DNA of 63,936 nt, the filler included, from Reticulomyxa filosa (Eukaryota; Protista; Foraminifera): the NCBI GenBank assembly GCA_000512085.1. It is 17 parts of 17 records of this genome, joined end to end, with 100 filler letters (N's around TTAATTAATTAA, not from the genome) between each part and the next. Parts side by side here need not be neighbours in the genome. Positions count along the whole stretch, not along the records: positions 34,825 to 46,716 come from ASPP01010848.1; 16 more parts are not named here. The stretch is one strand, 5' to 3'. The position numbers and the translations under genes are program-made. Positions 11,650 to 46,889 of this stretch are shown one piece after another. The notes under the pieces were generated by a model. The model worked only from the letters and a program-made list of their open reading frames with translations. It was not told where the DNA came from and did not search any database. How positions within the stretch are numbered: position 1 is the stretch's first letter; each line of letters begins with the position of its first letter.

Positions 11650-13151
11650 ATGACTACTCCAGTGTGTCTCTTGTCAGTGGGTATCGCATACCCTCCTTAT
11701 GGTTACGATGTGAAATCATTCAGTCAAATGATGAAGGAAAGCGCAGAATTTGTGGTAAAGAAACTTGATCCTTCCAAACCCGATCAAAAAAAACGTATCG
11801 ACGACATTCAAGAAAACGCGAACTGGGTGATCGGTTTGGCGGAAGCAAGTGGAATTGAAAAGCGACAATCTCATGTAAAAGACCTTTTGCAATTTTACAA
11901 AGAGCGTAACTTTTGCCCAACAGTCCAAGAGCGAGCAGAGATATGGAGAAAAGAATGCCCTGCGTTGGCGATGAAAGCAGTAGACAAATGTTTGTCCAAC
12001 TGGGGCGGGGACAAAAACCGAATTAAGACAGTAGTTGCACACAGTACAACTGGTTGGGATGTCCCCGGCTTGGCACACCATGTGATCTTCAACTTGGAAT
12101 TGCCCCAAGATGCTCGCGCAGTGCCAGTGATGTTTGTGGGCTGTCAAGGAGGTATGACGATATTATACGTGGGCAAGGTAATTGCAGAGAGTGAACAAAA
12201 CGGCGGTGACTTGGTAATGGCAGTGGGAGCGGAAATTCAAACCATATTGGGACGATTTTACGACGAAAAATGCAGTTTGGAACGAAGCATTTACATGCCC
12301 ATGGTGTTGTTCGGAGAGGGAGCAGCCGCTTGCATCATTGGTCGTCCTGACCTGAGCGTTGACGGAAAGAAATTTCCTTTGTGGGAATGGGGAAACCTGG
12401 GCGCGTATTACATCCCAAACACCAGACACGTGTTGATGATTGGCATTTCTGAGGAAGACGGATTGTACATTGAAAACTCGATTAAAAAAGAATTGCCGGT
12501 ACATTTGAACGCTGAGCTGACCAAACACTTGGGCAAGTGGTTGAAACACGCCTTGGGTGTTAATATCAATGATGTCGATTTTGCGGTTCACCCTGGCGGT
12601 CTGAAATTACTTAAAAAATTTTGCCAAATTAATTGAAGACATGGGATGTCAAGATTCGGAAAGCGCTACCAGATATTCGACCAGAAACTTGGTCACTTAC
12701 GGAAACTTGGCCAGCGCTGCCGTCCTTTTCATTTTGCATGACTTGGTCCAAAAATCCACGAAAAATCACATCTACTGCGTTTAGTAGAAAAACAAAAAAA
12801 AGGGGGGGAGGAAAGTCGGAGAGGGGCTGCCGAGGGGAGAAAGTTGCCCACTTCATTTTTTAGGTTATGAAGTACGAAAACGAAAGTGTTCATTACATAT
12901 CATACCCATTTTTTTTTACTAAGACCAAGTTGTTTGGTTGATGTGATGAATAGATGGCCATGGGACCTGGAGTATGCATGGAATACGGCGGGTTGCATCG
13001 CTATGATCCTTCCAAAGGAACAAAAAGAAAAAGCCAAAGCGGACAGGGAGGAAGCTCGTCATTTACCTGGATTTTGTTGACTTTGGTTGTGGCTTTGATT
13101 GCTTTTATTGCTGCTGGGTATACTGTAAATGACGTCAAACAACTTTTGTGA
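11650..13151 (+). CDS. Type III polyketide synthase (chalcone/stilbene synthase fold) with C-terminal transmembrane anchor
   Basis: Catalytic Cys in MFVGCQGG, LFGEGAAA, His in VHPGG. After removing one A from the A6 run at 12613-12618 the frame continues to YGNLASAAVLFIL (catalytic Asn). Intron 12779-12953, then MAMGPGVCME (cf. FGPGLTVE) and a hydrophobic tail. Confidence 0.92.
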
Positions 13152-13918
13152 GCTTTTCAATTTGTTTTATTGGTGTTTTGTTGCTTTGTTTGTCTTTTAT
13201 TTTGTTTATTTTTCTTAAGCTTTCGGTGCATTTATTTTTTGCAGCGTTTGTACTTTTACTGCATCTGATTCTACTTTTGGAGATTTTTCAATTTGTGCTT
13301 TATGGCTTGTTTCGGCTAATTTGTTTTTATTGATAGGGCATAAATCTTTCATTAAAGAAAAAAACTCACGAAAGGAAATCTTTTGAAACGGAAATGGTTT
13401 AAATGTTTCTTAACTTTGAAGTGAATGTTGTTTTTGTCACATTAAACATGAACGGTCATCAGGGGGATACAGCTAAGTGACCCTCACGGCCAGATTTTTC
13501 CGCAATTTTTTTTGTGAGAAACGATACGAAGTTTATAAAAAATTTGTGGCAACGTTAAAAAAGAATGACTTTCTCAAACAAAAAATTGCGTACAAACATA
13601 TAAAATCCTTTGGGTCGTGTCTACTGTTTGACTTACTTGTGCCACAGGTTCCTTTTTTTGATTGAATGCACTGCAATAAATCACTTCATGAGAAAAAAAC
13701 ATGTTTATTATTTTGCAAATTGTTTTTTGATCAAAATAAAAAATGTTCAACATATTTTGTTGTTTTTGTTTACTGTTTGTTGAGTTAATTCAATGAAAGA
13801 GGATTTTACGATTTGACAAAGGAATACTGTTTTCCATTAAAATTTTGATCCGAAAAGACGATAAACGATACACAACTAAAAAACACACAAACACATGTGC
13901 GTTGTTTTTTTATTTATT

Positions 13919-15505
13919 TCAATTAGTTTCAAGTTTTTCATCATCAATTTTGACTTTCAAAAGCCCGGAAATATTATATTCTCTGTGAATTTTCATGGCC
14001 AATTCCTTTTGCATTTCATAACGTAAAGTGTAAAGCCCTTGCTCATTGGAATATAGTTCGGATAGATATTTGCAGATATTTTCATCAAAGTGGTGAAGTA
14101 CACTCCCAATTAACCTGGCAAGATCTTTTGGCTCGATATAGTCAAGAACTGCCGGGGGAGGTATTTGAGCTCCAAAGACATGAGGCGGCTTGTGATCTGA
14201 GCCAAATATTTTATGTATATTGTCGAGTACAATTTTCACTTTATTTAATACTTGTGGAACGCCAATGCTCTCACCAACAATTTCTTTTCCCACAATTCCC
14301 CACAAATGGCGAGTGGGACAAAAATCTTCGTTTATATATGAATATATATACATGTATATATTTGTGTTGACATGTATATTTCTTGAGATTCAGAGGGAAG
14401 AAAGAAAAGTGACAAAACTTGGTACACGTGAAAAAGAAATGTGCAAGAGTTGGCAAAGTAAATGTGCATTATATTCCAAATTGGTAGCAATATCCTGAGC
14501 AACAAGCAATAGTATTTGCTGCGTAAGACCGGAAAACAAGGGAAGAAATACATTTTGTTTGGAAGTAGGAGGCTGGAGATGAGTATATTGTGCGAGAATC
14601 CACGCCCACAATTGGACAGACCACTCAATGGTTTTGGGTTGAATGTGCACACTACTTTTGGATGGAGACTGTTGTACGCTAAAAGCATTGCGAACATCGA
14701 CAAGCTGAAACAGCTCATGAATATATTGCAATGTGACATCATTGGCAACAATCACTTTCGAGTTTTGCAACGACGAAAATTGTTCGAATAACGAGACCAG
14801 GCTGTTATCCGAATTCGGATTGTATTCGCTACTCTCCATAGAAAAAGTGTTCATATGATAAAAATAGTTTGTATTACCAGCGTTCACGCCGAACAACAAA
14901 TTCAAGCCACACAAATGATGGAGGACATACAATCCATTGTGTAAATCTCCATTCATCAAACACAGATGCAATAACAAATTCAATACATTCGTGTGCTGCC
15001 AATACCGACCTTTGGGTAGACTTTGCAGAATGTCCACTAATCTTCTTGGGACTTCCTAAGTTTACATCATTTCAATCAATTACAAAAAAAAATTATATAC
15101 ATATATGTGTACATAAATATACATGTACATATACAACATATATAATAAACCTCATCACGTATTGCTTGAGTTTGAATATTGATGATAGAATCCAAATCAA
15201 AAGTTTGCATTGTCTGTGAGCAAATGATATCTCCAAGACATTTCAAGGCATCCGGTAGAGATATGACTCCATCGAAAAAGAAATCTAGTTTTTGACACAA
15301 CAATGGGAGATGGCTATTGGTCGAATACAGGTCGTATTTTTCACAAACCATGTCATAAAACTTGTCGCAAAGCTCCTCATCTTGGTCGTGCGTTTGTATC
15401 CAACTATACATTTTACCCAAGTACTCATTCACCAATTGGACTTGCAAGCTTTTGCCGGAGAGTTTTGAGACTGATATCAAATGCAAAGGCAAAAGAGTAA
15501 AACTT

Positions 15506-15536
<31 letters not shown>
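13919..15536 (-). CDS. Hypothetical helical protein, 5'-truncated, at least 3 exons
   Basis: Three successive minus-strand ORFs (15492-15076, 15037-14390, 14353-13919) separated by (TA)n-rich intron-like segments; no recognisable domain. Confidence 0.6.
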
Positions 15537-16947
15537 NNNNNNNNNNNNNNNNNNNNNNNNNNNNNNNNNNNNNNNNNNNNTTAATTAATTAANNNNNNNN
15601 NNNNNNNNNNNNNNNNNNNNNNNNNNNNNNNNNNNNGATTGCTTAAAAACAATAATCGTCCTATTTCTTATTTTTGATTTGTTGTAAATTAATCAAAAAA
15701 TTACAAAGATTTTATTTTTTCTACAATGACATCAAATTACTTCAAATAGCTAGTTTTTTAAAAAATCCCTTTGGAAACACTTTTGAAAAAAATTTTAAAA
15801 AAATAGAAAAAAACAATGAATAATAGTGAATAAATACAATTGAAAGTAAAATAGATCAATTTTATAATTTTTTTTTGTAATTTGACAACTGAACGTTTTT
15901 CTAATGTAATTATAGCGAAAATCGATGTTTTCGTTCACCTTATTTTGTTTGATCTAGGGGTGGCCCCTTCGAGTAATGTTGAAAATGAGATGTTGTGGAA
16001 ATTTTAAGATTTTCTCGCGTGGAGCAAAGGATATGAGTGAATTGGTAGTTCATAATTGCTATTACGAAAGAATCTTTGGAAATTATATTTTGTACACGAG
16101 TTAGAACGTGGTGAACTTATGATAGTCGAAGAAAAAAACAACATTACATAAGGCACGAAAAATTTTTAAAAAAGGCAAATCAGTCTTTAGCAGTGCATGC
16201 GAACTGCGCGTTCAGTCCATCTTTTTTTTTGGACGCGTGCAAACAAAAACGTTTTTATTTACGCTATACAAAAAAAAATTTCTTATAGGCTGAAACCTTG
16301 TTGCTTTTAAATTGATGAAGTTTATGAGATTATGAACGCTGATTGGTTATTAACTATTCGATGAAGGTAAAGATATTGTTTCCATCGCATATGGATGATA
16401 AAGACCATTTACTGCTTTTAAAAACAAACGCAAGATTGACGAAACGAAATTAGTGACAAGAAAAAATCAACGACAGAGATGAAGCCACAAATAATTCTCA
16501 AAGTGAAGTATCAAAATGATATTTGAAAAAAAACAATGCTTTTTAAAAATGTTATCTTTTTTGCCGAACTTGCAAAAAAGATAAGTGTCAATTGATCTAT
16601 CCTCTTTTTTGGATTTTAGACTGAAGTTATATTATGTGAGAAGTAGGATTTGTTTGAACGTTTGATCGTTTACTTTTTGTTGTTGTATCAAGTGAAAAAA
16701 TTTAATTTCTTTTGTAAATGCCACTAAGTTTTGTTATAAACGTGAATAAAAAAATAATTATTTGAAAGATTAAGTGGAAATTGTATGATAGGCACAATAT
16801 TAATCTAAACAGAATATCAAATTACATTGTTAAGCAGACCACTAAAGCTACAAATCTTTAAGGGTTGCCAACCATCACAGCAACTGCATGCTTTATATAC
16901 ATAACTGCGAACACGCGTGATAAAACATATTGAAGGAAAAAAAACGT

Positions 16948-35514: not shown

Positions 35515-38500
35515 CTTTGACGGTACGCAGTATTGCCACGCCAATGCCACGAGCCTCGACTGCAGGAGATGATGTCGGTCGCGATTCCTCAGGCAGCGTA
35601 ATGATGGACAACCGCGCGACGACGTTGAGCGTATCGTATTACGAAAGACCTCATTATTGGAATAACCCGACAGTGTTTCAAGAAATATTCCAAATAACGC
35701 CCAACGAAGACGAAATGCACTGCTATCGTGAGTTGATGAATATCATGTTCAGTGCACATGACGCTCGTGACACGATCGGAATTGAAGCCATTGCTCCATT
35801 CATGAAAGCGATGCAAATATTGCGAAAAGAAGATAACGCCATTGCCCATGACAATCGAGGATGGATATTCGCTATTGACAATCTTTTGTCTGTGCTACTA
35901 TATCGAGACGATTATTTTTATTACAAAACCAATTTGGTGGGAGGTTCGATTAATATACATTAATTATATATATGTATATACATATATATCCATATATATA
36001 CACATATATATAATATACATATATATACATGCATATACAAAACGTGTGTACATGCACTGGTATACGTAAACTTAACAAAAACAGAGTTACAACTATCGCT
36101 GACGCTGGAATTGGACGCGAACAAGAGTTTGAAGGACTTGGAAGACCGTAGTCTGCTGTACCACGTGAAAGAGGCGATTATTAAAGGATACAAAGGCATT
36201 CCGTCATTGACGAGCGAGGACGAGATGCCCAACATTGCACACGATGACATAATAGTGAGAAGCAAGACATTGTTGACAAAGTGGTACGACCTGCGACATG
36301 CGAATCAACGCGTGCATATCACATTTGGAATTTGCGTGGATGACTCGGAGATATTCCATGGGAGCAAATTGCAGTTTTTGTTTCACGTGATGGCATCGTG
36401 TCTGTCCAGACATGTTTTGGATCGAAAGTCGTTCCTGCCAATGTTCCAAAACTATACTCGCAGCAAGCCGTTGGGATTTCGACTTATCGACGCCAAGCCG
36501 AGTGACTTGAAAGTGTATCCGTACAATGACTACGTGAGTCAGTCGCCGGACAGTTTCGTCATCGCCGATATCCAAAGAGAGTTTTCAAGAGCATTTCGAG
36601 AGGAAGAGTTATTGTTAAACACGGAGCAATACGTGTCCAAAATTATTGAGCGGAACATTGTTACGAATATATAAAAAAAAAAAAATAATAATAATAATAA
36701 TAAAAAAATAGTGATCCAATAAGATAGTAAGACATTAACATTAACTTTAATATATAACATATATATATATATATATATACATATGTATATATATATATAT
36801 ATACATACTTATATGTGTATATGTATATATGTATATATAAAGGTTTTATGGCTCAGTGAGTTTGTAAAGAAGGTGCAACCGAAAATGATATTGGAAGAAA
36901 CAGCAAAGAAACAACAACAAGAATTCGAAGACCAAGCGATAAGCAAGAAGCAAACCAATGACACAATGCTGTCGGAAGTGGATATAATGGACGAGTTGCA
37001 ACGAGGCAAAAGTGAACCTGTTTCGCATCCTTCTTTTGCGCAGCAACAGCAACTCTACGGACGCAAGATATGTTGTAACAAATGCGAACTCACGCTGGTC
37101 ATGTTGGCACTGGCTATTTTGTTATCTGGAGTGGTGGCCATTAGTGGTTTCATTTCTTGGAAAGTGTTGTTACGTAACAAACGTTTGTTCATTTTTTTTT
37201 TTTCCCCTTTTTTTTTTTTTTTTTTTTGAAAAAAAAATTCATGCATGTGCGTTATGTACAAAAACGTATGTAAAATGTATACGTATAAACACATATGCTG
37301 AGGATAATAGGAGCATACCTTTGTATGCGACACTGAAGGGTGTAATGAAAATGGGTGACTCGGTGTTAGGCAATTCGACAGAGTTGATAACCGATCAATC
37401 GTTTTTCGCAAGCGAGCGCTTTCTCGACTTTTCGCAGTCGATTCGATTGCCACTCAACACGTCCGACCCACTCGAGACACTATACGAAAGCTATTTCCGA
37501 CCCGTCATTGTCGAGCCGACCATTGACGGCGTGTTTGGACTAGTGCGTGATCAAGACACAGGGTCGGTATTTGTTCAAGGCATTATGCTGGAGAAACCTT
37601 ATCTGGTGGCTTGCACGGGGATATTGGAATTGAGCAATTTTTCGTGTCAAAACTATCTTCCGAAAACGACGTTGGAAATATACGGAAACGCGTTTCCGAC
37701 CACTTCGCTGACTGGACTTTTGAATGACACATGGGACTATCGTCATGAGGCAAATGGCAGTACGTATCAGCGTTTGTATTGGTTCAACGACGAGGCCTTG
37801 GGAGGTTCGTCGTCCAGCGTTTGGATGGTGCAATTTCGTTACAATGCGCAATTTGACCAAATGGTGGCCGTGGTGGTGCGATCGTCGCAGATTGATGCAA
37901 AGTATGCCTCGTTGAAGTTGAACTTGGGAGCAGTGGTGTATTGGGTCAGCGACGACAAATACGGTGACGTAATTGTGTCATCGGTCGGCCAAAAGGGCTA
38001 TCAATTGACGGAACACACGAGTGACGACAGCAACATTGCATTGACCAGCTCGAGCGCAGTGTTAAGTGGAGGTGGGAGTGGTGGCAACGCAAAAACGCAT
38101 TCACAGGTGATCTCCGACACCGTCAAAGACCTTTCCAAATGGCAGAATGACGACGCTGCATACGCAAATGGACGCTTCTATGAAACAGTCTTTGCGAATA
38201 ATCGTAAGTATTACATGTACACCCGTCGCATCCAATTGGTGTCGCCGTCGCTCATGCAGTTTTGGTGTATCGTGGTGTATCCAGAAACAGAAGTGAACAA
38301 GAATGCAGATAAGGCATTTACGGTGGTGGTGGTGTTGACGACATTGGCGTGTATCCTCGCGGCAGCCATTGGGTGTATCGGACAAGCAGTGCCATTCATC
38401 CCAAGCGATGAGCGTTATCGCTTGCACCCATTTTTTAGCAGTTTCGAAAAGAACGCAAAGATGAGAGCGCCGGACGCAAACACGGTGAAGGATATCATGA

Positions 38501-38580
38501 CCAAGGCAAAGGAGCAAAAGGAGCGTGCCATGCATGAGCTTCACCATGTGCAGACAGTAGCAGTAGCAACAGCAGCAACA

Positions 38581-38620
<40 letters not shown>

Positions 38621-41600
38621 CAATTGCACAATCGCATGGTAATAGCAATGAAGAAACTGATGACTCAACCGAGCCAGGCAAGGATCATTCGAGTCGTAAT
38701 GGCAATGTAAATAATAACTACTTGCAGCCAACAAGAGTGAGTGATCCACCACCATCATCATCATCACTTATTCCAGGAGAAAGTGAACATTCCAAATCCA
38801 ATGATAACAATGACAATGACAATGACAATCACACCATTGATCGGAAAAATAGTCACACAAACACAACCAAACGTGGACACTCGGCGGGAGATGTATTAAA
38901 CCCCGCAAATGCGCACATGGCGATCGCTCTGCACTCCGACGACGGTCCTCACGACAAAGACAAGGCGAAACAAAACGATTTACGATCGAGACGCGCACGC
39001 ACGTTGGATGAGGCTCTGGTCAATATCCTTGCCAAAGACCCGAATAATAAGACGCTGTCGGTGAAGCAGGCCAAGCTGCAAATCCAAAACTGGAAGAAAG
39101 AGGAGCAGCGCAAGCAGATGCAATCGGGCATTAAGCGACAACTGATGCGATCGATATTCAATCGCGAGTCGTCGCAGTGGCAAACGACATGGGGATTGAT
39201 GGCATCACGCGCCCAAATCATTTTATGTACTTTGGTGTTCATTTTCATTGGCCTAAGTTACTTTGGCTGTCGTTCGTTGGCAAAGCAGGCGATCAATGAA
39301 ATGAAGCAAAACTACATGTCCATATCTGCGCGAATTGGCGAGCTCGGGATGGAGTTTGAGTATTTTAAAGGAAGATTGATGTTGCAAAACTTTAAGCGTA
39401 CATTGAGTGCGACATATTACACCACAGACGCGAGAGGATTGATAGTGTACGACTTTTGGAAAGACTATGACGTGTTGGGAGTGGTGACAGTGGAGAGTGC
39501 ATCGCAAAACGATTCGACGAGATTGACAACGGGATACGCATTAGTGGACTCGACCACAGTAGTGACATTGGACTTGAACACGTCATGGAAGCAGTGCTTG
39601 TATTGGACAGGAATGAACGGGCTATAACGTGCAAGATTGCAACACTTGGACGGCGAGTCAAGAGTTGGTGGACAATTTGCGTGATGATGGGAGCATCGTG
39701 GCCTGGTCCGAGCCGTATGCGTGCTTTGAAGGCGTTACAGTGTGTTATTTGGGTCTGTATGAGACCATTCGATCCAATACGTCCGTGGTATACATTGGAG
39801 TGCTTCTGTCATTCCAAGACGTAGCTTACATTGGCGAGACGCACATTTGGAAGTCGAGTGGCTTCTCCACACTGCTCGGTAACTATGCGACATTGACCAT
39901 GTCCGATCTCAACTTCTCCATGTTCGCAATGACCAATGCACGTCATAACACAAGATACTTGTTCAATGCCACCGACTACTCGCAATGGTATTTGATCGAA
40001 TCCACGTCCAAAGACTTGGTGTCATTCACACAAACTCAATACGACACCACACTACCTTATGTCACTCACGCCGATTCATCCGAAGACGCCACCGTGTCCA
40101 CCGTCACACAATATCTCATTCAACCGTCACCCAATCAAATTCCAAACTCGAATCAACTATCACTGCTCAAACAGATCTTTGCCTATCCCACCATCGTGGT
40201 CTACGTATACAAAGACTCGCTATTTATCACCGGCGACGACAATTGGACTAAACTCGATTGGATCTTTGTACTCAGCGTCTCCGAGCAAGTGTTTAGTGGT
40301 GACTTTGATCAATACGCCGCGCTTGGCGTCATCTGCGTCGGAGGGGCCCTCATCATCCTCGCGTACATCTACAGCGTGGGACGACGCAATTTCGACTTTG
40401 TCATCACGCAGTGGGAAGACGAGTACTTGGGGTCGTTGGCGAATCATTATGGCTGGAGCGAGTTTGCGCAGTATTCCACCAAGCATTTTGGATTGGATGA
40501 CGCGCAGCTGTTTGCACAAGAGGAGCGTCAGCTCCTGCGAGTGTTGTCTGACGACAAAGAGCAGCGCAAAGAGGAAGAGGAAGAGGAAGAGGAAGACGAA
40601 GTGATGGGTATTGAGCAGGAGTTGGAGAAAAAGCGAAACGAAGAAGAACAAGAAAGAGAAAGAGAAAAAGATAAAGATATAAATCTTGAAGATGATGATG
40701 ATGATGATGATATAGAAGAACAAAATAAAAAAGAGGGGGAAAAAAAAAAAAAACAAAAAAAAAGTTACAAAAAAACTTTACCTTTGGTCATAATAATCAT
40801 CAGAGATTGATCTCCAACAACAACAACAACAATAACAATAACAATGATGATGATGAAAATAATATGATTGAACAAAAGAACAGCTTGCTCGACGATAATG
40901 CAAAAGGTGGACAAGGGGACGGATGGGCGATCAACTCCGATATCAATGTGCTCGAATTTATATCGGAAAACATTCGACAATCTGTTCGTGACGCTTGCTT
41001 GCAGAGTTGGATGAGAGAAAATGACACCACCAGTAACAATCCGACGTCGAGACAAGAGATGCTAGACCACTATCACAGACGCGCATTAAACCATATCAAG
41101 CAGGCAATTCAGGGACTAAACATAATCACAGTCGTGCAGATCGAACAGACCGATAAACACCTTTGGCATCGATTGGGGTTGTATACGTTCCACACCAGTA
41201 CTTTTTGGGTCACTTTTTTGCATTGTGTCATGGCCGCACATTTGCTGCTGGCCTTTTGGAAACCGTACAGCTCCGACATTTTGCGTCGACAACATGGATA
41301 TAGCAAAGGCGTCGTTGTCACCGAGTGTCTATGTTTGGTGGTGGAAATCATGGACATTTGGATGACCGGTCTCATTCAATTCCGATGGCAGGACAGCGAG
41401 GCCAATCCATTAGTATCTCCTGTGCAACAAACGCGCATCTTTGTCACTCGTATCATTGTCACTCTTTTGGTCATCATCGATCTTTGCATTGCCCAAACTT
41501 GGTATTTCGTCTTGTCCGGATACTTGGATGTTCGACCCTTAATACTGATCTTGGCCAATGACAATCTCTTGGGATCTTTGTATGCCTTCCTCATGACCAT

Positions 41601-43700
41601 GTACGAGGCCAGAGACGGCATGTTGTTGTATCTGGTGGTGTGGACCATCGCTGCCGTGGCCGGCACACTCACGTTCCGATTTGACGTGTTTCTCGAGTAT
41701 TCCAATATCCAGTCCTTTTACAACTTCATTCGGTCCATGATGCAAAGCTTTGTCTTTATGGTCTCTGGTGAAAACTACGAAAACATTGTGTATGCCGCCG
41801 TGGCCAAGTCGCAAGGGCTTATCTTTTATTTCATCCTGCTCACCATTTCCGGTACCTTTCTCGTCATTCCATTGGTCGTGTCTAAATTTCAAGAAGGTGT
41901 TATATGTGTTATGTGTATATACATATATGTACATATATATGTATATATGTACATAACATATATGCGTCACATGACCTCAAAAAAATATATTATAAATTAT
42001 ACGTATATGTATATGTATATGTACATGTATTTTTATTTTTTTTTTGTTCATGTGAAGCGTTTAGTGCCATTTATAGCGATGAAAGAGAAAGACGCAAATT
42101 CTTTAAACGCACTGGGTTTATTGCAGCCTTTTGCTTGGTGAACTTGGACAATGACAATGTTGTGTCGCCCACCGAGTTTGAATCGTTTATTAGCTATTTG
42201 AAACGAATCCCTGGAAAGGAGGCCAAAGAACTGGTTCGCGGCTTGCAAGGATTCGATAACTTGGACGACGATGGCAACGACCAAATAGAAATCAACGAGT
42301 TTGTGGTTCATTTGGAAAACATTTACAACAGACCGACAATCACTGATATTATTGAGGACGACTCACTTCGCACGTGGCTCCGAACTTCGGTGATTGAAAA
42401 AGAGTCATTCAATCAAGCCGTGCTGGTGATCATTTTCACAGAGGTGATGTTATTGATGATGTACGGTACATATCCTGGCAAGTTGTCTTTGCGAATGTTG
42501 GACATTATGTTGGGCATTTGTGTGCTGTTGAATGGGTTTGATGTGTTCATCAAATTGGTCGTGTATGGTTGGGATTACTATTGGAATACTAGCGAATGTC
42601 GTGTCATTCCATTGATTCCAATTGTCAACTCGATGCATACTTCCGACGAATCCAATCATAGCATTCGTCGACCATTGCCTGCTACCGAAGGACTGGTCCA
42701 GTCCATGAGCTCCTCGATTCGATCCAGAGACGTAACAAATCATGGGATGATGTATGGACCTCCACGTCAAGATGACCCATTGGAATTGCTGCATCGACAA
42801 TTTGCACATCGTTTGGACTTGGTCATTGTGTGCGTATCCGTCACATTGTTTATCGTAAGTAGGACGGCCTTTGGCTCCAATTTTTCTTTGGACAGTCAAG
42901 AAAACTACTTTTGGGTTCGCTTGGTCATGATCTTCCCATTATTTCGTATGTTGACGCTCATTCGAACTACTCGCGCGGCCGTGTATACTGTGTTCAAAGT
43001 CATCCCCAGATTCTCCAGTTTGTTGGTACTCATGTTGTTGGTGTTCTATGTGTATGCCATCTTTGGAACTGCCTTGGTCGGAAATCAAATCGAATATCTG
43101 ACTTTGGGTCCCTCGTCATTTGTCTACTTTGGCTTTGGCACTGTCGCACAAACGTGGCTATCCTTGTTCCAAATGCTTGTCAGCGAAGGCTGGAATAACA
43201 TCATGGACGAAACCATCATTGCTACCAACAACTTTGCTTGGGCTTTTTATTTCATGACCTTCATGTTCATTGTCACTCTGATTTTCACCAATTTGTTCTT
43301 TGGTATGGTGCTCGCCGTCGTCGACGAAATCGAAAAAGAAAGAAAGACCATGGACGATGAAAACAGAGGTGGACACACTGGCACTACGTTCAACAGTCCC
43401 CACGATCCTAATCACAATGTCGATCCCAGTCGTGCCTTGCAAGTACTTCAAAGCAATCCCAGCATTGTTCGCATGAATATTTCCATTGATCCGAGTGAAA
43501 ATGCCGACTCCTCCTTTGCTCCACCCGCCAATGGATCATCCAGGATGCTGCTCAATCGAAGTGGGGGTCACACTTCTTCACTTCATCCCAACTCAGCTGG
43601 AGGTCGGCTTGCTGGAAAGAGATCTGGCTCGACTGCCTTGACCATCAAGAAATTTCAAAAGAAAGAAAAATCTTTGCAATACATACCGCAAAGAGGATAA
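35515..43700 (+). CDS. Giant membrane protein: two TM-Cache-like-TM sensor modules followed by an EF-hand two-pore (2x6TM) cation channel
   Basis: Exons ~35515-35943, ~36085-36660, ~36843-37186, 37311-41896 (homopolymer shifts at ~39620 and ~40729-40775) and 42058-43700; probably more exons 5' to the contig edge. Channel repeat I ~41150-41890 (VRPLILIL; FVFMVSGENY), EF-hands 42140-42300, repeat II ~42410-43330 (FRMLTLIRTTR; LFQMLVSEGWNNIM; FTNLFFGMVL). Confidence 0.8.
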
Positions 43701-44059: not shown

Positions 44060-44965
44060 GAAATAACAAACATTTGCGAGAACTTTAACAAATGGCAAGA
44101 CTTTGACTGACATATTATTTTATGCCATTTCGTTTAATCAATAATTTATACAAATATTGGATAGGTTGTAAGAGACGAAAAAAACAAGGCATGAACATAG
44201 AGAGGCCCTGCAAGCGCCAAGACCGAAAACTACGACTCGACAGTGGCAACCGCGAATTCGCAAAAAAAAAAAAAAGGGTCGATGGCGGCGATAAGACAAT
44301 GGATGATGAAGACGGGCCCAATGCCAATGACATGTTCAGGTATTTTCAACGATGTCTGGATGAGTTGTATCAAGGCGTATGGCAAATTGTGCAATTGTGC
44401 AAGTTATCGAACTGTCCTCGAGCGATTTTGCGCTGTGTGCATTTGCTGCTGGACAATTATGACAAATACAGTTGCATATTAAGAGAAACTTTTCCATCAA
44501 TTTTATTTGGAGAAAAGAATTCCCGATCTACGACTATTTGAGTGATGACCACTGAGGGCTACAAAGTATTGCGTGTTCCGAAAAGTGAGTATACTATATC
44601 AAATGTATTACCATATTCCAATTGGAAACATCACCTCAGACATGCGGATATCAATCACGAACTTGTTCTTTTTCAAATATTTGACTGATTACAAGTTTGT
44701 ATGGTGGATCGGCGAGAGCAATCGTCCGGACTTGGTAGGCTTAGATGAAGACAACAATTTGTATGAAAACGAACAATCGAATACAGTCATTAATGCTAAG
44801 TGCGCTTATTGGAGCATTTGTGTGAAACTCCATATATGCTATCTAATTATCACCACAGTTGTCCAATCAGAGCATATTCAATCTATTCAGTTGGACGCAC
44901 ATGACTTTATGCAATATTGGCTCAACAACACTGATGACAATGCTGCTGCGGAAAATATCATTTAA
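44060..44965 (+). pseudogene. Disrupted coding-like segment, product unknown
   Basis: Coding-like composition split into ORFs 44122-44541 and 44573-44965, with stops that introns do not obviously explain. Confidence 0.35.
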
Positions 44966-46889
44966 TTCATTGATATGGAGCGACTATTGAAAATATTTAT
45001 CATATAAACAAGTGAATCTCTCCAAATAGAACATTCAAAAGCAAATAATCCAATACATTTCTTTCTTTTTATGTTGTTTTCAACAAAATTGCACTGAGAA
45101 TCTCTAATTTCTCTTTGCAAATGCAAACAGGTTGAAAAAAGGACAAACAATAATAATGATTGATTTTTGCAAGTTTGGATTTATTTTTGAACAGGAAAAT
45201 CTTCAAATAGGAAGTTCTTCTGCTTTGCATTAAAAAAGGGAATTACATTCTTCATTTAATTATCCATTTATCAAAAAACATAGATTTTTCCAAAAATAAT
45301 AATTTTATTTCATATTAAGTATTTGTGTACTTTTTTTTGAAAACCACAAATAACTCTTGTCCAATTCAATCACATGCAATTGTCAATATTCGAGAGTAAT
45401 GTGTAACTTAACAGTGATGCGCATAAGGTAATTTGAACAAGAATCGAAGACATAAAATGAAATTGATGAAAAACACATTAATTGCATTTAAATCTTTTAA
45501 TTTCTCTTTGAAATCACATTTAATCACTTTATGAGTATTTTTTGAATTCAATTCATTGTTATTCACAGAAAAAGTCTTGATTGTGTATCTCTTTCTTTAG
45601 ATATAAATAAAATCAATTGGTTGCACTTCGGTGAAGCTATCACAAAAAAGTATTAAACTGATCATGATTATCATTCACAAATACAGTGGATTGAATATTT
45701 CATTTCATAAAGATTATTAATTTGATTTTTAAAATATTATCACAGCTTTTTTTTCAGTAAAATTTGTTTATTTGGAACTTTATTTTCCATTTCTTTGCGT
45801 TCTTTTGTTTCAATGATTTTTTGTTATTGTCAAAGTCTTTTAAATATCACTTGTACTATGAGTACTATAATTGTTGTTTGTGTTTAATAAACAAAGCTTA
45901 TATTTTTGTCTTTTGAATACGTTACATTACTTGTGATTTGCTTTATCATTTAAGCTAACTTGGCATGTTGATTATATATTTTTATAATCAAAAGATTAAA
46001 ATGCATTTAAATCTAGTTTATTAATTTAATAGTATTTACTAACTGAATAAAAAACAATTGCAACAATGGAGAGAAAAAGAATACTGGAAAAGAATAAATA
46101 TTGAATGGAATATATGTTATAACAAGGAGTACCAAACATACTATTGATAAAGAAAAAGATAAAAATAATGTTATCATTTGCACATGAGATAGTCCTAGGT
46201 ACGCGTTCTAAAAAAACTACTCAGTTCTCCTTTTTCCTTTTTCATAGTCCTTAAATGATGAAGCAATTTCGTTTCGTTCTTAAGAAGAGAAAATTACAAG
46301 ATTGTACTGCAGCAAGTTTTTTTACTTTTATCTTTTTGCAATTGAACTTTTAAATTGTTTGAGTTGAAAAGTCCTAAAATTTTCCCCTTTTATGGACAAT
46401 AACCAAGCAACAAAGCAAAACTATTTAAATAAGAATAAATATACTGTATTCATTTTTTGCGTGAAATTTACAAATAAAATTTCATAAATGTTTTACCTAC
46501 TTCTCATATGATTTCAGCATTTAGAACAAATTTTTAAAAATTTTTAAAATGAAAACAACTCGTGGCACAAATTTATTTTCAAATGGTGTGATTTTTATTC
46601 AAAAAGAATTAGAGTTGGCACAAAACTCCCCCAGTTCAACAAAACTTCAAAAAAAAATTCCATAATAAATTCATCTATCATCCAACTAAAAAACCAAGAA
46701 CCAAAAGGAAGAAGCTNNNNNNNNNNNNNNNNNNNNNNNNNNNNNNNNNNNNNNNNNNNNTTAATTAATTAANNNNNNNNNNNNNNNNNNNNNNNNNNNN
46801 NNNNNNNNNNNNNNNNTGCATATATATATATATATGCATATATATATATATATATATATGGATGTATATGATATGCACGTTTATATACT

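Follow-up and report, generated by a model that had tools for sequence, protein, structure and literature searches.

The locus and its gene

The DNA considered here, called the window, is a stretch of 63,936 nucleotides from Reticulomyxa filosa, a freshwater naked foraminifer (monothalamid), and all positions are counted along its whole length. One of its pieces, taken from ASPP01010848.1 (34825-46716), carries a gene whose predicted product joins two extracytoplasmic domains of Cache type, D1 and D2, to a two-repeat cation channel. This multi-exon gene runs on the + strand from at least 35.5 to 43.7 kb and encodes a product of more than 2,500 amino acids (aa) with 16 transmembrane (TM) helices. 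Its coding stretches, of ~44-48% GC, alternate in this piece with AT-rich, microsatellite-like introns. As judged from sequence comparison, this R. filosa fusion gene is a member of a small foraminiferal family, which includes further R. filosa loci (L001, L002 and L003), homologous proteins such as the paralog P0004, and P0009 of Nonionella stella. Its features are as follows, S1 to S6 being the hydrophobic segments of each channel repeat:

35517-35960, + strand: N-terminal cytosolic exon A (homology from ~35631; tblastn with paralog P0004)
36111-36671, + strand: N-terminal cytosolic exon B (separated from exon A by a ~140-nt AT-rich intron; collinear in L001 and L002)
36843-37163, + strand: exon with the pre-TM1 segment and TM1 (homology to P0004 335-446, P0005 and P0009 878-913)
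37101-37163, + strand: TM1 (hydropathy)
37164-37302, + strand: intron, phase 0, AT- and T-rich, with GTGTTG donor and AG acceptor (read from the sequence)
37303-38322, + strand: D1, predicted extracytoplasmic dCache domain of ~340 aa (AlphaFold2, Foldseek, VIA-align)
38323-38388, + strand: TM2 (hydropathy 2.74; kept in all homologs)
38389-39213, + strand: cytosolic low-complexity linker with runs of T, N, D and S, basic immediately before TM3 (translation, composition)
39214-39270, + strand: TM3 (hydropathy)
39271-40312, + strand: D2, predicted extracytoplasmic Cache-type domain of ~350 aa, broken by a one-base frame break at GGG 39619-39621
40313-40387, + strand: TM4 (hydropathy), with the basic residues GRRNF coming next
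40388-41199, + strand: cytosolic linker from TM4 to S1, made up of the post-TM4 segment WEDEYL..., an acidic/lysine-rich low-complexity stretch and a pre-S1 segment
41200-41896, + strand: channel repeat I (S1-S6), six hydrophobic segments, filter SGENY with its Glu at 41770-41772
41897-42057, + strand: intron, phase 1, with GTGTTA donor and AG acceptor (read from the sequence)
42123-42314, + strand: putative EF-hand pair in the inter-repeat linker (weak Pfam EF-hand matches)
42405-43330, + strand: channel repeat II (S1-S6), Pfam Ion_trans at 3.5e-24, filter VSEGW with its Glu at 43185-43187
43331-43700, + strand: cytosolic C-terminal tail, stop codon 43698-43700

Much of this layout had been proposed in an earlier note drawn up from the sequence, which read the locus as TM-domain-TM, a linker, TM-domain-TM and then a 6TM-EF-hand-6TM channel. 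All of these elements lie where it placed them: D1 ends in the FWCIVVYPETEV motif, WSEPY begins exactly at 39704 within D2, and frame breaks are present both at the GGG at ~39620 and at the runs in 40729-40775. The end that it gave to the feature, 43700, also holds, but its start, 37085, does not, as the gene begins upstream, with exons from ~35517. Likewise, the two homopolymer corrections by which it obtained a continuous product were correctly located, but two introns, 37164-37302 and 41897-42057, have to be removed as well.

Across the first of these introns the reading frame goes from 0 to 1, and the paralogs run from TM1 straight into D1. The second is confirmed by its splice product, which matches the 45%-identical homolog P0002 through the junction. 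Upstream of TM1, exons A and B were recovered by tblastn with residues 1-335 of paralog P0004 (51% identity, E 1e-121), and residues 447-706 of N. stella P0009 also match them (24% identity, E 8e-18). Since these upstream exons are homologous to the N-terminal region of both the paralog and the N. stella protein, the ATG at 36885 is taken to be internal to its exon. The cytosolic region that they encode is without match to any Pfam family. A conserved N-terminal region of at least 340 aa before TM1 can be followed at 35517-36671 of the window, at 9872-11079 of L001 and at ~447-706 of P0009, and the N. stella protein has ~450 more residues ahead of it. The contig edge at 34825 may cut off the true 5' end of the gene. 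In GenBank, by contrast with this layout, only the last 928 aa are annotated, as P0001, a "cation transporter" that is 100% identical to the C-terminal channel part; this model begins at the ATG at 40864 (MIEQKNS) and translates part of the 41897-42057 intron.

The introns and spacers at 35960-36090, 36760-36830 and 41897-42057 consist mostly of (TATG/TATA)n-like microsatellite sequence, and such introns translate as pseudo-open reading frames rich in Y, I, C and M, which are taken for coding by gene callers. Downstream of the channel gene, two short open reading frames (ORFs) of 139 and 130 aa are found (window 44122-44965, + strand), and the piece closes with ~1.7 kb of very AT-rich sequence (45000-46716; GC content 0.25-0.28).

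Continuity of the polypeptide and its relatives

The window copy can be read through only across two frame breaks. At the first, frame 1 runs into a stop at 39625-27, frame 2 being open from 39617 onwards, and deletion of one base of the GGG at 39619-21 joins the two frames. At the second, frame 2 and frame 1 alike stay open through 40729-40807, where G5, A13, A9 and A7 runs are found. Each site is bridged by an intact homolog. In paralog locus L001, an ORF at 13281-14756 covers TM3, the whole of D2 and TM4 without interruption, and thus spans the homolog of the first break site. The two D2 pieces of the window abut without loss when compared with the intact D2 of P0004, P0005, P0006 and P0009, and the break falls within a loop that varies in sequence, flanked by a C-x-x-W and a D-C that are both conserved. 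A second L001 ORF, at 14949-16409, runs from the post-TM4 segment (WEDEYL...FAQEE.QLL) to the end of repeat I and so covers both sides of the second break; the stretch from TM4 to S1 is also continuous in N. stella P0009, in P0011 of Bolivina argentea and in the environmental scaffold L005. Two introns were considered as other ways across: a short one at 39620 was rejected since the paralogs and N. stella read through the homologous loop, and a 40-nt GT...AG one at ~40764-40803 was rejected since it does not restore the channel frame.

The family to which these bridges belong is small. An exhaustive HMMER search with D1 returned seven relatives only, among 1.84 billion representative proteins. 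One of them is P0009 (EukProt), an N. stella protein of 2886 aa encoded by a single ORF, in which a long N-terminal region comes first, then TM1-D1-TM2 and TM3-D2-TM4 with a linker between them, and, beyond an acidic linker, an EF-hand region and Ion_trans. With P0009 as seed, B. argentea P0011 was found; its 1609 aa, again in a single ORF, run from inside TM1 through D1, D2 and both channel repeats. Transcriptomes of N. stella and B. argentea were obtained from polyA RNA and processed with Trinity and TransDecoder (PMC8153729), and we infer that the EukProt entries P0009 and P0011 come from that study. Within R. filosa, every segment of loci L001 and L003 is collinear with the window and on the same strand, channel included, and L002 is collinear until its contig ends at TM4. 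Two environmental contigs add to this. The Tara Oceans metagenome scaffold L005 (6158 nt, GC 0.23) is collinear with P0009 residues 782-2513, and one uninterrupted alignment covers D2, TM4, the linker, repeat I and the EF-hands; in the JGI contig L004 the order of segments is the same as in the window. L005 is 44-80% identical to the N. stella protein and presumably comes from a foraminifer that is marine, possibly planktonic, and whose genome is very AT-rich. Scans of metagenome contigs with P0009:1640-2110 or with P0013 gave no confirmed relatives.

The single polypeptide of well over 2000 aa that the earlier note had proposed is thus found as a collinear arrangement in three R. filosa loci, two foraminiferal transcript ORFs and two environmental contigs, and the search for the same architecture in other foraminifera that it had suggested led to N. 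stella and B. argentea. That the architecture is that of one polypeptide is, in our estimate, very probable, and sequence comparison indicates that it has been kept both in the monothalamid R. filosa and in the rotaliid foraminifera N. stella and B. argentea. Because intact ORFs, orthologs and environmental contigs bridge the breaks, the division into separate genes in GenBank is regarded as an annotation artefact.

The GenBank models split each R. filosa family member into at least two proteins (window 40864-43700, L001 10001-18454, L003 58-6807). P0006, for its part, is named "HECT domain-containing family protein", and no Pfam match of any kind was found in it.

The sensor domains and the channel

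Hydropathy brackets D1 by TM1 and TM2 and D2 by TM3 and TM4, and the homologs are alike in this. Basic residues sit on the cytosolic sides of the TM helices, and N-glycosylation sequons (N-x-S/T) are denser in D1 and D2 (1.75 per 100 aa) than in the cytosolic parts (0.65 per 100 aa). On account of TM spacing, basic residues and sequon density, D1 and D2 are placed on the extracytoplasmic side, and the same evidence assigns the N-terminus, both linkers and the channel N-terminus to the cytosol. A cytosolic channel N-terminus is the arrangement required by a voltage-gated-type channel.

D1 was modelled with AlphaFold2 from the window's own sequence together with eight homologs. The model (pLDDT 66, pTM 0.68) consists of a 40-residue N-terminal helix, two alpha/beta modules and a C-terminal helix. 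Nearly all of its best 50 PDB matches in Foldseek are dCache ligand-binding domains, with E 5e-7 to 1e-5 and probability 1.0, among them those of TlpC, PctD, TlpA, Tlp1, Tlp3, Mlp24, PctC and HK1S-Z. Superposition with VIA-align gave Z 13-18 and aligned 220-263 residues over the full length of the domain (model 1-340) at a root-mean-square deviation (rmsd) of 3.2-4. As modelled, D1 is a dCache domain, with its long N-terminal helix and two tandem PAS-like modules.

For D2, the intact domain of a paralog, 45-55% identical to the window pieces, was folded instead, with the window pieces as alignment rows. This model is weak (pLDDT 58). All of its top Foldseek matches are nonetheless sensors of the dCache or CHASE type (E 1e-4 to 1e-2), and they include GPR158 (7ewl) and the AHK4 sensor (3t4k and related entries). 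VIA-align superposes the helix and the distal module (Z 9-10, rmsd 3.0-3.5, model residues 22-202); the proximal half (model residues ~205-360) is of low confidence, and only some alignments reach into it. The model therefore supports at least a helix and a distal Cache module in D2, in the canonical TM context, and D2 is probably a double Cache. BLAST detects no resemblance between D1 and D2, and Pfam found no VWA and no other ectodomain family in D1 or D2 in any of the window pieces or homologs.

In the channel part, each half has six hydrophobic segments and a pore loop. Repeat II is the more readily placed: it matches Pfam Ion_trans at 3.5e-24, and the PDB entries closest to it are those of Cav3 T-type channels (1e-18 to 4e-21), with bacterial Nav channels next and no two-pore channel (TPC) among the best 60. 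The Glu of its S-E-G-W filter aligns with the E/E/D/D selectivity locus of Cav3.1, and its S4 has four basic residues (~42918-42974) that are conserved across foraminifera. For repeat I, the window piece gave no Pfam match, and a four-sequence profile matched, in PDB, repeat I of human TPC2 only (S3-S6, E 4e-4), such that the filter G-E-N aligns with T-A-N of TPC2; its S4 has a single Arg. Both filter glutamates are conserved in the foraminiferal homologs. Between the two repeats no similarity was found by BLAST, and hhalign aligned only overlapping alignment ends. In the linker that joins them, the putative EF-hand pair matches Pfam EF-hand_6, _7 and _1 at E 0.004-0.01, below the curated cut-offs; homolog P0002 carries PF13499, and the EF loop residues are conserved across foraminifera. 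Since both filters (GEN and SEGW) depart from the uncharged Asn-type filter of TPCs, the channel is not called a TPC; from its sequence it appears TPC-like in build and Cav-like in pore chemistry.

These results bear unevenly on what the earlier note had said of the domains. Its Cache assignment, made from motifs, is not borne out by Pfam but is supported by the predicted folds of both domains, the modelling that it had called for giving a full double Cache for D1 and a helix with a distal Cache module for D2, whose proximal half is poorly modelled. Of the Pfam families that it had named, Ion_trans was recovered on repeat II and the EF-hands below curated cut-offs, while dCache was absent. Finally, its "two-pore channel" is apt for the two-repeat build, with its putative EF-hand pair, and for the likeness of repeat I to TPC2, but not for repeat II, which is nearer to Cav3 and bacterial Nav channels, nor for the filter glutamates.

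Mechanism, alternatives and known systems

A mechanism can be proposed on this basis. As for every two-repeat channel, dimerisation would give a four-fold pore, here ringed by four glutamates, and such a pore would be expected, from established Cav biology, to be Ca2+-permeable and Cav-like. The dimer would carry four Cache modules on its extracellular or lumenal face. Binding of small molecules in the distal Cache pockets could shift the TM helices on either side, in the manner of bacterial chemoreceptors and kinases, and this movement could modulate gating through the conserved post-TM4 and pre-S1 segments. As in plant TPC1, the gate might also be under the control of voltage, via S4 of repeat II, and of cytosolic Ca2+, via the EF-hands. 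The parts of this proposal do not stand equally firmly. It is reasonably likely that the Cache domains act as sensors that regulate the channel. Direct gating of the pore by a ligand, as put forward in the earlier note and suggested by the architecture alone, is possible but doubtful. The existence of a foraminiferal class of ionotropic receptors, in which built-in double-Cache sensors would directly gate a two-repeat Ca2+ channel in response to small molecules of the extracellular medium or vacuolar lumen, is put forward tentatively, as the less probable outcome.

Several observations weigh against this proposal, at the level of the domains, of their coupling and of the gene itself. At E <= 1, Pfam found no Cache family (PF02743 dCache_1 or relatives) in window pieces, paralogs or orthologs, and no Cache chain was found when D1 and D2 profiles were compared with PDB sequences. 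The alignments behind the D1 and D2 models are shallow (6-8 sequences) and the D2 model is weak. By eye, neither D1 nor D2 shows an evident amino-acid-binding motif of the dCache_1AA subclass (Y, R-x-W, a second Y 13-17 residues further on, and D; Y121, R126, W128, Y144 and D173 in PctA; PMC8915833): D2 retains the P-Y of WSEPY, without an R-x-W 13-17 residues upstream, and D1 has R-L-Y-W instead. For this reason, no ligand class is assigned. In addition, ~270 aa, largely of low complexity, lie between TM4 and S1, which argues against tight mechanical coupling. Lastly, the frame breaks of the window copy could be genuine frameshifts, their reading as errors being drawn from comparison.

The main rival accepts the fusion as real but sees in the Cache ectodomains a built-in counterpart of alpha2delta, serving folding, trafficking, surface stability or the binding of matrix or partners, with ligand effects that would be slow and indirect. 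In animals a dCache domain accompanies Cav as the separate alpha2delta, whose gabapentin/amino-acid site acts on trafficking (PMC8915833); the filters do make the foraminiferal pore Cav-like, and the long, partly low-complexity linker from TM4 to S1 would suit a looser coupling. However, the foraminiferal domains are without the VWA insertion, each has its own TM pair, like a bacterial transmembrane sensor and not like a peripheral or glycosylphosphatidylinositol-anchored type of subunit, and R. filosa and N. stella share conserved segments after TM4 and before S1, which suggests that these segments have a function. An accessory role of this kind is conceivable, if rather unlikely.

A different alternative concerns the gene itself: the window copy might be a recently inactivated pseudogene of a true fusion family, its frameshifts being real. 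The presence of two independent breaks within one gene would fit, and at least three paralogs could take over its function. However, each break lies within a homopolymer run, and downstream of them ~1,300 codons stay open, without in-frame stop, with a ratio of nonsynonymous to synonymous substitution rates (dN/dS) versus paralog L001 of 0.06-0.11, dS being saturated. In identity to N. stella, the window copy and the paralog reach 42.7% versus 42.4% for repeat II and 31.8% versus 27.0% for D2. The window copy is thus no more diverged from the outgroup than the paralog, which favours assembly errors. Moreover, L001 has a frame break of its own inside D1, at a run of Asn codons (12397-12460), an indication that the R. 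filosa assembly suffers systematically from indel errors at simple repeats. The two breaks are therefore most likely, on these comparisons, single-base errors at homopolymer runs in the assembly, and inactivation of the window copy appears improbable. A listing of sequencing runs gave only two "synthetic metagenome" DNA runs, containing 9% of the words, and no RNA run.

It is also very unlikely that D1 and D2 are unrelated alpha/beta ectodomains whose PAS-like resemblance arose by chance or through model bias. PAS-like folds are common, and the missing sequence-level match to Cache families, the shallow alignments and the moderate-to-low confidence of the models would all be expected in that case; against it, D1 fits full-length double-Cache domains end to end, essentially all top matches are dCache, and the TM-domain-TM context is canonical. 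A search with protein embeddings independently indicates dCache_1 for both domains, with D1 beside dCache_1 clusters at 0.96 and D2 beside dCache_1 and MCP-like_PDC_1, both falling at 0.93-0.96, although this serves as a lead only. Weakest of all, the existence of separate adjacent genes as in GenBank, for one or more double-Cache membrane receptors and for a 928-aa channel starting at ATG 40864, can point to models that split both the window copy and L001 (into 1479-aa and 1066-aa proteins), but is next to untenable given that only 54 nt separate the frame-2 stop from that ATG, that the channel frame is open from 40729, that an L001 ORF runs from the post-TM4 segment into the channel, that orthologs of two species and two environmental contigs are single ORFs, and that the GenBank models demonstrably misread an intron.

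With these alternatives weighed, a fusion of Cache-type ectodomains to a two-repeat channel is the reading that we retain. It is a new domain architecture built from known kinds, and would be categorically new if ligand gating were shown. A full-text literature search, of incomplete coverage, found neither a Cache domain fused to a TPC, a Cav or another channel of voltage-gated type nor any account of the foraminiferal proteins themselves. No other kind of extracellular sensor is as common in prokaryotes as the Cache domain; the known eukaryotic examples come chiefly from alpha2delta/CACHD1, GPR158/179 and CHASE receptors. Standard annotation is blind to the architecture described here, as Pfam misses the Cache domains and the GenBank models split the protein. 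Were the Cache modules to gate or tune the pore, they would define a new class of ionotropic receptor. This would be a cis version of the trans partnership of Cache and Cav seen in animals with alpha2delta, and, after ionotropic glutamate receptors (iGluRs), a second instance in which a tetrameric cation channel has taken over a sensor domain from prokaryotes. It would also offer a natural experiment on how Cache domains communicate with Cav or TPC channels, with a bearing on alpha2delta and its gabapentinoid sites. The protein would also be a candidate chemosensory pathway of Ca2+ entry for foraminifera, which rely on Ca2+ handling in their pseudopodial behaviour and, in the marine species, in calcification. 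Finally, a two-repeat channel with a Cav-like Glu in both filters bears on the proposed intermediate between one- and four-repeat channels.

The closest known system in build is plant TPC1 (for example that of Arabidopsis), which likewise has two Shaker-type 6TM repeats in one chain, and whose EF-hand pair in the inter-repeat linker would correspond to the putative pair described here. The first voltage-sensor-like domain of TPC1 is poorly charged and the second charged, and the foraminiferal S4 segments follow the same pattern, poor in repeat I and charged in repeat II. The foraminiferal protein differs from TPC1 and TPC2 in having an N-terminal extension of ~1,700 residues, which brings four additional TM helices and the two Cache ectodomains. 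Its filters, GEN and SEGW, contain Glu where those of human TPC2, TAN and VNN, are of the uncharged Asn type, and its repeat II is nearer to Cav3 and bacterial Nav channels than to TPCs.

The likeness to animal Cav alpha1 with alpha2delta or CACHD1 lies in the presence of a dCache domain on the extracytoplasmic side of a Ca2+-channel-type pore, and in a filter Glu at the Cav3.1 locus. In contrast to these animal channels, the Cache domains are here in the same chain, bracketed by TM helices and without a VWA insertion, and the pore is made of two repeats, not four. A VWA insertion is reported for all Pfam-detectable eukaryotic dCache_1 proteins (Gumerov et al., PMC8915833), whereas the D1 model is that of an uninterrupted dCache by VIA-align. 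By analogy only, the arrangement also recalls iGluRs, in which a bacterial-type extracellular domain for small molecules sits on a tetrameric P-loop cation pore. Their sensor is a periplasmic-binding-protein clamshell, unrelated to Cache, and their pore is of 2TM type without voltage-sensor domains; ligand gating is proven for iGluRs, whereas here it is a proposal.

On the sensor side, the TM-sensor-TM topology is that of the bacterial dCache_1 sensors (PctD, TlpQ, McpX, Tlp1, TlpA/TlpC, PctA-C, Mlp24, HK1S-Z), on which the D1 model superposes over the whole double module and the D2 model over the helix and the distal module, at identities of 5-13%. The output is what separates them, being a methyl-accepting chemotaxis protein (MCP), kinase or cyclase module in bacteria and an ion channel here. 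The same distinction holds among eukaryotes: GPR158/GPR179 and the plant CHASE cytokinin receptors are also membrane receptors with a Cache-type ectodomain, but their transducer is a 7TM G-protein-coupled receptor or a histidine kinase, in place of which the foraminiferal protein has a voltage-gated-type cation channel.

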